NCBI GenBank assembly: GCA_964234715.1
Contig: OZ174279.1
DNA length: 64,000 nucleotides
Strand: one strand, 5' to 3'
From: Podarcis melisellensis
Taxonomy: Eukaryota
Below are positions 10,911-63,660 of this stretch, one piece after another. Position 1 is the first letter of the stretch. The number at the start of each line of letters is the position of its first letter. The notes below the pieces were generated by a model, which made no database searches, had not been told where the DNA came from, and saw only the letters and a list, made by a program, of their open reading frames with translations. Position numbers and translations under genes: made by a program.

Positions 10911-12452
10911 CAAACCCACACTATCCTCACTGGGCAAGCACAAAATTAATAGGAAAAAACTGTGGTCAGTCAACTTGGTGCCCTCTAGATGTTGTTGGCG
11001 TACAACTCCCATCAGTCCCAGCCAGCATGGCTAATGGTCAGGGATGACCATTATAGCAACAAGGGAAGCAAGGCACATTGGGTCATGAACTCTTGAACTC
11101 TAACCCCAGAGTCAATAGTGCCATCTATAAGAATCCAACCTGTGATACAACATGATAGGGCGAGGGAAAGAGAGAGAAAGCTTTTTCACAGCAAGGAAAT
11201 TCTGTGTAATCACTATTCTGTTGGAGCTTTCAAGTGGGCACAGATAATGAAATATTAACATATTTCAAAGAAACTTGCTAGGGCTCTATGCAATATAAAA
11301 AGGTTGTTAAACACAAGGACATGTATACATTTGCCAACAGCATAGAGCTTCGGAGCCTGGGAAATAACCTGTTCCCATATTGCACAACTGTCTATAGGTT
11401 TCCCCTGAGAGGTTTTTTTGTACTGGAGAATGATTTACTTCTGGCCACCGGGGGAGGCTATGGAGAAGGAACTTTTTTATATGTACTTCTTTATATGTAG
11501 TCCATTTAACTAGTCACATCTGAGTATACTGAGGGACTCTAGTCTACACTTCCCTTGTATTTGGTCTCTCTCACGGAGCACTATGATTTGGTAAGATTCA
11601 GTTGCTGACATTGTTGACTAGCACAGCTTATCGTGCAGACGAAGAACACCTTTTCTAGGTCTCTCTCAGCAAGGCAACCAAATAGTAACATGTATTAGTG
11701 TGTGTCCTAAAAACAAACGTTCATCACACAGTTCAGCTTTGCATGCCTGGGAGAGTACGGATTTGCTACAGAATATATGATGCTGCCTTATAGCAGGTTG
11801 AACCATATGTCCAAGTAGTCCAGTACAGTCTACTCTGACTGGCAATGGATCTCCCATGTCTCAGATGGAGGTCTTTCCCATCATCTTTTCCCTGATTCTT
11901 CCAAGTGGAGATGCCAAGAATTGAGCATAGGACCTGCCATATGCACAGCATATGCTGTAGCACTGAACAATGGCCCCTTCACCCACCTTCCCGTTCCATA
12001 CTATTTGCTTGCACTCATCTTTTGTCTTCCATTTTCCACCCTGCTCTGTAGCCATAGTGTTCAACTAGGCAAGGTCAAGCTTGTTTGCATGGATGCAGTT
12101 GACTTTTGCTGCCAGCACATACGGAAGATCAGCAGAAGGCCTGGGACTCAGGTGTTGTAAGGCTCTTACACAATGTCAGGGCAGGACGGCTATCTATGCA
12201 AATGCTAAGTGTTATTACCATCATCACCACCACAGGGAAGCCGACTGCAGCACCCAGTGCTAGCTTTGAGACCCAATTAAGATTTGGCAGTATTCGTCCC
12301 TCAATGTCAGCATCAGGGTCGAACAGATTAATCCAACCCTCCCCTGCACTCCTCATCTATAGCTGCCTCTGTTCTTTACTGGTAAACATGCTGATCTTTA
12401 CAGAGCCACCTTAACAGAATTTTTGGTTGGGCCCAAGTGAAGAGAATTGGGG

Positions 12453-13018
12453 NNNNNNNNNNNNNNNNNNNNNNNNNNNNNNNNNNNNNNNNNNNNNNNN
12501 NNNNNNNNNNNNNNNNNNNNNNNNNNNNNNNNNNNNNNNNNNNNNNNNNNNNNNNNNNNNNNNNNNNNNNNNNNNNNNNNNNNNNNNNNNNNNNNNNNNN
12601 NNNNNNNNNNNNNNNNNNNNNNNNNNNNNNNNNNNNNNNNNNNNNNNNNNNNNNNNNNNNNNNNNGCACTAATTACAAGACGTTTTCCCAGTGCTTATGT
12701 AAAATATGACAGAGCAGCAGCTTAGGGAATTGCAAAAAAACTGCTTCTAATTTCCACTGAGAAACTGACAAACANNNNNNNNNNNNNNNNNNNNNNNNNN
12801 NNNNNNNNNNNNNNNNNNNNNNNNNNNNNNNNNNNNNNNNNNNNNNNNNNNNNNNNNNNNNNNNNNNNNNNNNNNNNNNNNNNNNNNNNNNNNNNNNNNN
12901 NNNNNNNNNNNNNNNNNNNNNNNNNNNNNNNNNNNNNNNNNNNNNNNNNNNNNNNNNNNNNNNNNNNNNNNNNNNNNNNNNNNNNNNNNNNNNNNNNNNN
13001 NNNNNNNNNNNNNNNNNN
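12453..13018. other. Two N-runs (12453-12665, 12775-13018) separated by a 109-bp island
   Basis: Read directly; content unknown. Confidence 0.99.
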
Positions 13019-13699
13019 TTCTTTGCAGGCAGGGAAAAAAAATACCCACACCAACAAAACAGAAACAAAACAAAAAAACGCAACCAACAGCTTATTATTT
13101 GGTGTGTGTTACTTAAATTTAAAAGACTCGAGGCAGTTAACTTCCTGCGTAGCGTTCTAACTTTGCTGTGAAGTTAAAAGCATTGGGGACATTACCTAAG
13201 CAAAGGCAGAAGGAGGAGAACAGGCAAGGGCAGAGAGACTTGGGGATGGGGGAAGAAAGACAATACGGTACTGAAATGCAGTCAGACCTAAACACTGCTT
13301 TGTGGTTTGGCAACTAAAGTATCGGCTGCACTGAGTAGGTTAGCTGGCATACAAACAAAGGGGGCTGATCATCCTAGAGGGGGTATTTGAACACTGCAGC
13401 AAGGGAACAGGAGGCAGTGGCACAACCATAGCAACAGGTTTCAGTGCAGGGAAGTCATGGTAACTGAAAATACCAGAGTCCAGGGCCTTTCATGTGTATT
13501 CACAGTAAGATCAGTACTGAATGGCAGCAGACTGGATGGTTCATGCTATTTGGGATAGCAATGGTGGGGAGAATCAGGCCACCCTCCCACTGCAAGACTT
13601 TGGAACCCAACTGAAAGGGTTGCAGGGAGTGCGACATTAGATAATCTAGCAATAAAATGACCGGAAAGAGCAACAGGATACAATGTGACTGACTACAAC

Positions 13700-14170
13700 A
13701 AGGAAACTCTGGTTTACAATGTTTCACCAGTTATGATTATTCCGAACTAGAACACCTTGGTATCAAGAATCCATGCTCTTGGTTGGACTATTGCAATGCA
13801 CACTATATGGAGCTACCCTTGAAGATGGCTCCAGAAACCGCAGGTAGTGCAAGATACTGCTGTCCAGCTATTATGTGGGGCAGTGAGAAGGGAAAGAGCA
13901 AATTCACCAAGTGCAATCCAATGTATTGCTGATGATGTACCAAGTTCTAGATGACCCAGTACTGAAATGAATGCCTTCCTCAACACCTGCCAACCTGTAA
14001 AGAACACTAGAGAGTCCCAGCTTGTGTTGCTGTCCATGGGCATGGCCCATAGGGCAATGAGACAGAGCAGGGCCTTCCTGTCTGTGGCTCCCCAATCTGT
14101 GAAGCTCCCAAAGGAAATCTGATTGACTTTGTTAATTAAAAACATATTTCTTTAGCAAGGCCTTTGGAAC
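13700..14170 (+). mobile_element. Degraded L2-like LINE RT/3' fragment
   Basis: ttggactattgcaatgcacactatatggagctacccttgaagatggctccagaaac (LDYCNALY-like motif) and downstream agggccttcctgtctgtggctccc (RAF.SVAP-like motif). Confidence 0.5.
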
Positions 14171-61100: not shown

Positions 61101-62271
61101 TTCTTCGTGTCTTTTTTTCTTCTTCTACCATTTCTGAATTTAAAACTCTTAGGAATAGTAAGCTTTGTTGAATAAGCATTTGGTGCACATTTTGCTGTTG
61201 TAAATCAATTCATCAGCCCAGATTAAATTTAAGAAATCTATAATCTCAGGAAATCTCCATCTTCCCCCTTGGAATCCAATGCTGAAAAGCACTGAACAGA
61301 TGCAAGTGCAGTTCATTTCTGTAGGGATGCGTCAGCTGATCACCTTGAATTGCCATGTGCAGAAACAAATGTGCAGGAAAGAAGTTAAATTAGCCAGCTG
61401 CAGCCAAAATGACAAAATTGTGCAGGACTGAAAAAATAAACAAATTTGGTGTGGCATAAGCACTTGTAGACCACAGCCTACTTCAAATGCAGGAAGTTTC
61501 CTGGCCACAGAGAGTATCTGATGAAGTGCAACATGAGCCTTTGTAGACTCCAATCAATGACATTAGATGAGCACAGTAGACAGGAAACTTCCTGCATAGA
61601 AAGTAGACTGCAGCTTACAAAAAGCTGCCACAATAAAGGATAACCTTTTAAATGTCTTGGTTGGGGTATGTCAGGCACATGAGACCCCCACCTTGCAAAG
61701 GAGGTCTGTTTTAGTACATGGATGGGGCATTGCCTTGGGCTCCATGGTGGAAGAAAGGCAGTATAAATCTAAGAAAATAAGGTGCTTAGGGTGCCTTTTG
61801 AAATGGCTGATCCTGGGTTCAGAATCGTCTGACACTGTTTACTTGCTAACCATGTAGCAAATTATATGATCAATGTTGTCACTGAATTTATAAAAAAGAA
61901 AGGAGTGTGGTTGAGGACAGAGACAGATAGACACATTGGCTGATGGTTCCTTTTTTCATTCCTGTTATTCAGAAGGTACTCAATGTCCACAAGACTAAAT
62001 ATAATTTATTCTAATGTATGAAATATGTGGTTGTAAGCATCTGGTTGGATACTGTTAGAACAGTATGATGGACTACATGGGACACTGGCATGATTCAGAA
62101 AGCTGTTCTTACGTGCTGGTGCTGTCAAACACCATCCCATTGTTGTTGCTGCTGCTGTTGTTTGGACATGTCCAAAACTAGATCATTGGAACTCAGTCTT
62201 GATGGAAAAAAGAGCTATCACTGGATGCTAATGACCAAAGACTCTTCAGGCAGCAGTAGATGGCATCATTC

Positions 62272-62503
62272 GTGGGGCTGCACCGTTCACCTCCTTCTTG
62301 CTGAGTCGCTGCAGCATACCGGGATGGAAAAAGGGAGGCGTGCAGCAGCAGCAAGGTCAGTATAGTGCAAACACGCCAGCATGTCTCATTCCACTGTTGT
62401 GTTTGCACCATCATGCACTTGTTGTCACACCCTTCATCCTTTCTGTCCTCATAGGCTGCAGCAACTCAACGGGATGGAGGTCAGGTGAGTGCTGCAGTCC
62501 CAC
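62272..62503. mobile_element. Imperfect fold-back (MITE-like) element
   Basis: Nested inverted pairs gtggggctgca / tgcagtcccac, gagtcgctgcagc / gctgcagcaactc, gtgcaaacac / gtgtttgcac. Confidence 0.55.
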
Positions 62504-63504
62504 CACACCTTTAGGTATATTGTTGAGATGCCACACTGCAAGAAGATGTTGAAATGACACCCCATCTATTAACAGCAGCCTAGATGACCATATGTCAGGA
62601 ATGGAAGCTCCAGCTCCAACAGAGGCATTGGTAACAAGAATCTGGAATACTCTTTAATTATTGTTTTGAATTTTGAGTCACTCATTTATAAATGCTTAAT
62701 TACCATGATGAAATTTAAGAATGAAGTATTTAGAACAATTGTGAATGTAAATTAGATTAATGTATTTAATATGGAATAAGAGAGACCGGAAATTATCCTA
62801 TACAAAGGAAATTACTATGTAAATTGAAGTAGCTGCAATTTATACTAAAGCTATGATGCCTAACGGATTGAGAATTATTATGTTAAAAAAACAACAACCC
62901 TGGAATTTTATGAAGTTTTATTTAGGTATGTTATCAGTAGAATAAAGTCAAGACATCTAAGGCTAACAATGGTTTCCCTCTTACCTAGCACCCTGCATTT
63001 TCAACTGTAGTTCCTATACAGAGCAGCCCACAGGCAGATGAATATTTACTAAGCCACTGTACTATTCAACGTGATCTTAAAAGATACCCTGGTCTTCCAT
63101 CCCCCAAATTACTCTTGCCAGGGCAACTAATTATACTGTACTCTATTGTAGAAAGCAACCACTAGCTGCACTTTTGCCATTAGACACAATACAGTACATG
63201 ACTGAGTTTCATCTTGGAGGTGTATAGGACTAGCTGGAAACCTAGAGGAAAAGGTGTGACAATGGCAACACACAAACCCGAGCTTGTGCTTCCTCACTGT
63301 AGAGAACAGGGTACACATGCAAGCTGCCCTGGAATTACATGCAAATCCCATTATACATTTAAGGTCCCTGTCCCCCTGCTGCTTCAGATCTCCAATCTCT
63401 TGCAAAGCCAACTTAAAAAAACCCCCACACAACAACTTACATTAACATGCTGTATTTTACCCTCGCCACCAGAAATACTAAGGGTGCTATTTGTAATTGT
63501 ATTC

Positions 63505-63660
63505 NNNNNNNNNNNNNNNNNNNNNNNNNNNNNNNNNNNNNNNNNNNNNNNNNNNNNNNNNNNNNNNNNNNNNNNNNNNNNNNNNNNNNNNNNNNNNNNN
63601 NNNNNNNNNNNNNNNNNNNNNNNNNNNNNNNNNNNNNNNNNNNNNNNNNNNNNNNNNNNN
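63505..63660. other. N-run (156 bp)
   Basis: Read directly. Confidence 0.99.

Follow-up and report, generated by a model that had tools for sequence, protein, structure and literature searches.

Nine runs of N between and upstream of the visible BTRC exons of a Podarcis contig are probably masks over deeply conserved, mostly non-coding elements

A stretch of 64,000 nucleotides from the lizard Podarcis melisellensis (contig OZ174279.1 of assembly GCA_964234715.1; hereafter the window) carries exons of the BTRC gene and is interrupted by nine runs of N. Do these runs stand for sequence that was never read, or for sequence that was hidden, and in the latter case, what kind of DNA lies beneath them? 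Our analysis indicates that it is highly probable that all nine are deliberate masks, made by a program, and that they are not assembly gaps; the DNA beneath them would be real, continuous and of lizard type. The masks probably cover elements of deep conservation, most of them non-coding, which are orthologous to the cluster of ultraconserved elements (UCEs) known from the introns of human BTRC. A full count of the window gave exactly nine N-runs, whose coordinates and lengths agreed with those of the initial annotation, as did the recounted visible islands of 44, 82 and 109 nt which separate some of them. The runs are clustered, with nine blocks over 51 kb and two composites of 566 and 826 nt. 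Soft masking by lower-case letters was absent from the window. The runs and islands are as follows:

12453-12665, N-run 1, 213 nt (5 mod 8, the sole such length), BTRC intron between residues 108 and 109
12666-12774, visible island between runs 1 and 2, 109 nt
12775-13018, N-run 2, 244 nt (4 mod 8), BTRC intron between residues 108 and 109
28938-29101, N-run 3, 164 nt (4 mod 8), BTRC intron between residues 108 and 109
30462-30817, N-run 4, 356 nt (4 mod 8), BTRC intron between residues 108 and 109
45740-45871, N-run 5, 132 nt (4 mod 8), BTRC intron between residues 78 and 79
52649-52860, N-run 6, 212 nt (4 mod 8), 5' of residue 53
52861-52942, visible island between runs 6 and 7, 82 nt
52943-53250, N-run 7, 308 nt (4 mod 8), 5' of residue 53
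53251-53294, visible island between runs 7 and 8, 44 nt
53295-53474, N-run 8, 180 nt (4 mod 8), 5' of residue 53
52649-53474, composite block of N-runs 6, 7 and 8, 826 nt, 4.6-5.4 kb 5' of the exon of residues 53-78
63505-63660, N-run 9, 156 nt (4 mod 8), 15.4 kb 5' of the exon of residues 53-78

The decisive evidence for masks came from the lengths of the runs. Eight of the nine lengths leave a remainder of 4 when divided by 8; the exception, run 1 with its 213 nt, deviates by a single base. An excess of this kind in any residue class has a probability of P ~4e-6. Because the lengths are quantised in this way, they are not gap sizes estimated by an assembler, and since no contig would be as short as the islands of 44-109 nt, the runs are not ordinary gaps either. 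Assembly gaps would be expected to lie between plausible contigs and to have a conventional or unquantised size, neither of which was the case here. Thus, the opinion already expressed in the initial annotation that the runs are not assembly gaps was corroborated by the quantised lengths as well as by the shortness of the islands. The starts of the runs did not fall on a common grid, their phases mod 8 being 5, 7, 2, 6, 4, 1, 7, 7 and 1. The starts of runs 7 and 8 are in phase with each other, which fits one collinear alignment without being significant. We propose that each run would be the union of fixed-length words matched to a reference that was indexed every 8 bases, and that the deviating length of run 1 would follow from one 1-nt indel inside this run. 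Seven of the nine lengths also equal 4 mod 16, while run 9 gave 12 and run 1 gave 5. This pattern and the length of the shortest run (132 nt) hint at the word length, the stride and the minimum-length rule of the masking program.

The position of the runs within the gene was determined by means of the BTRC exons that are visible on the minus strand of the window:

47994-48071, minus strand, BTRC exon encoding residues 53-78, 78 nt, bounded by ag/gt, 24 of 26 residues identical to PDB 6ttu_T (E 4.4e-10), unmasked
39144-39233, minus strand, BTRC exon encoding residues 79-108, 90 nt, bounded by ag/gt, 27 of 30 residues identical to 6ttu_T (E 7e-13), unmasked
4411-4642, minus strand, BTRC D-domain exon encoding residues 109-186, 232 nt, bounded by ag/gt, unmasked
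194-380, minus strand, BTRC F-box exon encoding residues from 187 on, bounded by ag/gt, unmasked

An open reading frame (ORF) at positions 4343-4615 encodes the Beta-TrCP D domain (Pfam PF12125, Beta-TrCP_D, E 6.8e-26) and is identical in 68 of 69 positions to residues 118-186 of the 605-aa F-box/WD repeat protein 1A (PDB 6ttu_T). The exons were searched singly and not as a spliced model. Those at 47994-48071 and 39144-39233 were obtained as leads from short motifs and were confirmed by their splice sites and by the protein match. The F-box exon at 194-380 was assigned through a match to a BTRC motif together with its ag/gt boundaries.

The four visible exons encode consecutive residues, in order and on one strand, from which it follows that, at gene scale, the scaffold keeps its collinearity across runs 1-5. 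These five runs are intronic, since they are flanked by exons of consecutive residues; for the same reason they cannot be constitutive coding exons, and the reading frame across them poses no problem. The 34.5-kb intron between residues 108 and 109 contains runs 1-4, and that between residues 78 and 79 contains run 5, so that all five have the non-coding location that is typical of UCEs. The statement of the initial annotation that the runs lie in BTRC introns holds true for runs 1-5, but for runs 6-9 only a position 5' of residue 53 can be given. The latter four are probably non-coding as well. No CpG-island-like promoter is visible between 48072 and 64000, and the 5' end of BTRC probably lies beyond the window. 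Run 9 is not a CpG-island promoter, because its flanks are poor in CpG.

What, then, do the masks hide? From the pattern described above and from the sequence context we infer that the criterion of the mask was likeness to human DNA. The masking step would blank those stretches whose letters are nearly all the same as in human DNA, and in a genome that is not mammalian, intronic stretches of this kind would be ultraconserved non-coding elements. The unmasked exons provide a yardstick. As the exon whose product is identical to the human protein in 68 of 69 amino acids was left unmasked, the masked DNA must be closer to the reference of the mask than is a nearly identical coding exon. A likeness at the DNA level which exceeds that of an exon for a nearly identical protein, and which is found in introns, is a hallmark of UCEs. 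In that case, the hidden stretches would be orthologous to the intronic UCE cluster of human BTRC, to which uc.306, uc.308, uc.309 and the dedUCE cluster belong.

This assumption was supported by the base composition next to the masks. The composition statistics leave out 12666-13018. About 1.9 kb of flank contribute to the signal. Within 150 nt of the masks, the observed/expected ratio of CpG was ~0.38-0.39 compared with 0.22 in the background (P ~0.03), and the rho value of GpC was 1.25 compared with 1.08 (P 0.05). The value of CC/GG was 1.12 compared with 1.17, which agrees in direction with the published signature but is not significant alone (P=0.26). Considered jointly, the excess had a P of ~0.003-0.004 in 20,000 random placements. 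The CpG ratio decreased with the distance from the mask edge, from 0.50 through 0.32, 0.27 and 0.25 to 0.22 and 0.23 in the outermost bins, while GpC rho was 1.22-1.27 within 300 nt and 1.08-1.11 beyond. Single flanks were particularly rich: the left flank of run 3 contained seven CpG in 150 nt, and the two flanks of run 4 contained four and seven CpG as well as 11 and 12 GpC per 150 nt. For comparison, two published UCE sets gave 1.30 and 1.22 for GpC, 0.27 and 0.37 for CpG, and 1.08 and 1.13 for CC/GG, whereas the genome-wide values are 1.02, 0.24 and 1.24, respectively (PMC13513235 Table 1). The dinucleotide signature of UCEs (excess of GpC, retained CpG, depleted CC/GG) was found here in the flanks, the visible part of the blocks. 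The decay of CpG with distance would be the behaviour expected of conserved shoulders. Accordingly, the statement of the initial annotation that the flanks retain CpGs was borne out, with an uneven signal. Its proposal that the flanks are the less conserved shoulders of the hidden cores is supported by their UCE-like composition, which weakens away from the masks.

A UCE cluster in this gene is not without precedent. Human BTRC (203 kb) contains one of the 52 densest UCE clusters of the genome (PMC13513235 Table 2). This cluster comprises 11 UCEs, which occupy 25 kb of the central part of the gene and of which only one touches an exon (PMC13513235). The element uc.308 is non-exonic and lies in BTRC (PMC3626580), uc.309 is antisense to a Btrc intron (PMC8749388), and uc.306 has been linked to BTRC (PMC10086085). 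That BTRC introns carry ultraconserved elements, as stated in the initial annotation, is thus documented for the human gene (PMC13513235, PMC3626580, PMC8749388). Like the human elements, the masked blocks reside in the same host gene, are intronic, clustered and nearly all non-exonic, and the composition of their flanks matches the published UCE signature. Unlike these, they comprise nine blocks over 51 kb; they are putative orthologues of the human elements. The dedUCE elements were defined on placental mammals, and their reach into reptiles would be an extension of that definition.

The masked blocks also resemble the elements of UCNEbase, which are defined by at least 95% identity between human and chicken over more than 200 bp and are up to 1419 bp long (PMC3531063). 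The single runs measure 132-356 nt and the composites 566 and 826 nt, as compared to 200-1419 nt of the ultraconserved non-coding elements (UCNEs) in that collection, and like UCNE blocks, the masks cluster in a large, bystander-like gene beside a homeobox gene. UCNEbase numbers pieces that are at most 50 bp apart serially (PMC3531063), and the 44-nt island recalls such split elements. The likeness is one of size and clustering; unlike UCNEs, four of the nine runs are shorter than 200 nt. The main text of the UCNEbase paper does not mention BTRC, LBX1 or FGF8 (PMC3531063).

If the hidden stretches are UCEs, they may be assumed, by analogy with comparable clusters, to regulate development in cis and over long distances within the regulatory domain of LBX1 and BTRC. 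LBX1 lies outside the window, and the neighbourhood of BTRC was taken from the mouse, in which Lbx1 is followed by Btrc, Poll, Dpcd, Fbxw4 and Fgf8 (PMC10020157). In this species, Lbx1 and Btrc share one topologically associating domain (TAD) with Poll/Dpcd at the boundary, while the apical ectodermal ridge (AER) enhancers of Fgf8 reside in introns of Fbxw4 in the neighbouring TAD (PMC10020157). Because Btrc belongs to the TAD of Lbx1 and not to that of Fgf8, LBX1 or BTRC would be a likelier target than FGF8. LBX1 would be the likeliest target and BTRC the second, BTRC otherwise being a mere host. The idea of a single enhancer array extending from LBX1 to FGF8, put forward in the initial annotation, was overstated in view of the separation of the two mouse TADs (PMC10020157). 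There is nevertheless a parallel to the Fgf8 holo-enhancer elements CE58, CE59, CE61 and CE66 of the split-hand/foot malformation 3 (SHFM3) region. They belong to the same chromosomal neighbourhood, and as proposed here, they are conserved intronic elements in an F-box gene that act on a neighbouring developmental gene. Unlike the masked blocks, they are located in introns of Fbxw4 in the Fgf8 TAD, across the CTCF boundary at Poll/Dpcd (PMC10020157). The masked elements are not Fgf8 holo-enhancers, and they probably do not serve FGF8.

Several observations weigh against conserved regulatory elements beneath the masks. The criterion of the mask was deduced by us and is not documented, and the hidden letters were judged through their flanks and context. 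The composition evidence is limited to the mentioned ~1.9 kb of flank, in which the signal was uneven, being strongest at runs 3 and 4 and at the 82-nt island and weak at run 5, on the right side of run 8 and at run 9. Moreover, enrichment of transcription factor motifs (homeobox, SOX, FOX, POU) was absent from the flanks. TAAT/ATTA (P=0.20) and TAATTA (P=0.07) did not occur there above chance, nor did FOX-like (P=0.26) or PBX/MEIS-like motifs (P=0.41). SOX-like motifs were even depleted, and the flanks did not contain any POU octamer. Hence, the assertion that the flanks carry TAAT/ATTA together with SOX, FOX and POU motifs did not withstand comparison with chance, and clustering of developmental motifs above background, as expected of enhancers, was not seen in the flanks, the part of the blocks to which the motif counts apply. 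Finally, it is conceivable, albeit doubtful, that one of the runs 6-9 hides an alternative BTRC exon.

The latter notion is part of a broader explanation according to which the masks are deliberate but one or more of them cover transcribed features instead of regulatory DNA. One candidate, which could apply to runs 6-9 only, is the alternative BTRC exon encoding residues 17-52 together with conserved intron sequence on either side; another is an exon of a conserved small RNA or long non-coding RNA (lncRNA). In a search with short, fuzzy motifs, which can give no more than a lead, exon 1 and the alternative exon of 36 aa, which together encode BTRC residues 1-52, were not found in the visible DNA 5' of 48071; they are located either past position 64000 or beneath one of the masks. 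In addition, one of the 11 clustered UCEs of human BTRC touches an exon (PMC13513235), and both uc.308 and uc.309 have been reported to be transcribed (PMC3626580, PMC8749388). On the other hand, exons 1 and 2 may well lie beyond position 64000, runs 1-5 are situated between exons of consecutive residues, and the composite block of 826 nt by far exceeds an exon of 108 nt. A search of the visible DNA of the whole window against Rfam with gathering thresholds yielded 0 matches, the masked letters being outside its view. On balance, we regard transcribed features under the masks as unlikely. A special variant, in which the 826-nt block is one exceptionally long element, nearly identical in a reptile and human, around the alternative exon of residues 17-52, acting in BTRC splicing or RNA regulation and not as an LBX1 enhancer, appears somewhat more doubtful still.

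A further explanation is that the masks served another purpose and conceal repeats, low-complexity DNA, virus-like or other screened sequences. Using Tandem Repeats Finder (TRF), no microsatellite abutting any of the N-runs was detected in the window. The array nearest to run 2 is a weak A-rich one at 13053-13076, 35 nt away, and that nearest to run 5 is (TC)31 at 45342-45403, at a distance of 337 nt. Perfect microsatellites of 40-62 nt stayed visible in the window, and the following arrays found by TRF are all unmasked:

1905-1950, (ATA)15
10833-10907, AAT/AATA array
33334-33394, (AG)30
45342-45403, (TC)31

When the 300-nt flanks of the N-runs were compared by blastn, they matched neither one another nor any other part of the window. 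As long microsatellites are visible and the flanks lack mutual similarity, we concluded that this is not a repeat mask, and the blastn comparison led us to reject masked repeat copies. A hard repeat mask would be expected to cover repeats and low-complexity DNA throughout and to end inside repeat copies, which is not what the visible microsatellites and the flanks show. The claims that no run abuts a repeat or microsatellite and that the flanks are unique were confirmed by TRF and blastn, respectively, with TRF and blastn in agreement on the former. Since the four arrays listed above are left visible, and since the flanks neither display the likeness expected from the ends of one repeat family nor have a composition pointing to repeats rather than constraint, this explanation is very improbable. 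The same intron as that of N-runs 1-4 also contains an unmasked tandem repeat at 25411-25470 (TRF), which consists of 2.1 copies of a 28-nt unit. ORF fragments at 57850-58188 (plus strand), 18304-18561 (plus strand) and 48686-49176 (minus strand) resemble, as we assume, C-terminal parts of ORF2 proteins of long interspersed nuclear elements (LINEs), and these fragments probably represent retroposons that have decayed within introns of BTRC. Five ORF fragments with a LINE-like appearance were compared with Pfam and gave no match.

The weakest explanation, that the N-runs are true assembly gaps, i.e. unread sequence with a length estimated by the assembler, can appeal to N as the customary gap symbol and to a program annotation in which six of the nine are marked as assembly gaps, but it is hardly tenable against the quantisation at 4 mod 8, the three islands too short for contigs, the lack of abutting microsatellites or repeats and the collinear order of the BTRC exons across runs 1-5.

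Deliberate masks over conserved, mostly non-coding DNA thus account best for the nine runs. Twenty sequencing runs from eight studies contain the flanks of runs 6-8, and one organism holds 0.77-0.99 of the words sampled from the stretch around these runs. Eight further organisms hold 0.53-0.60 of the 31-letter words sampled between 51000 and 55500. These eight are thus close relatives only, with a divergence of roughly 1.7% as estimated from the share of 31-mers, and public genome data exist for several near relatives of the source species.

For the reading of this sequence it follows that N-runs with a length of 4 mod 8 are a masking artefact, neither gaps nor discoveries. The positions of the masks make up a blind map of near-identity to the reference of the mask. 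A dense UCE cluster in the large 5' introns of BTRC, within the LBX1/BTRC domain and the SHFM3 region, is already known, and our data point to neither a novel type of element nor a novel mechanism. What the map of the masks does suggest is that the UCE cluster of BTRC dates back to the amniote ancestor.

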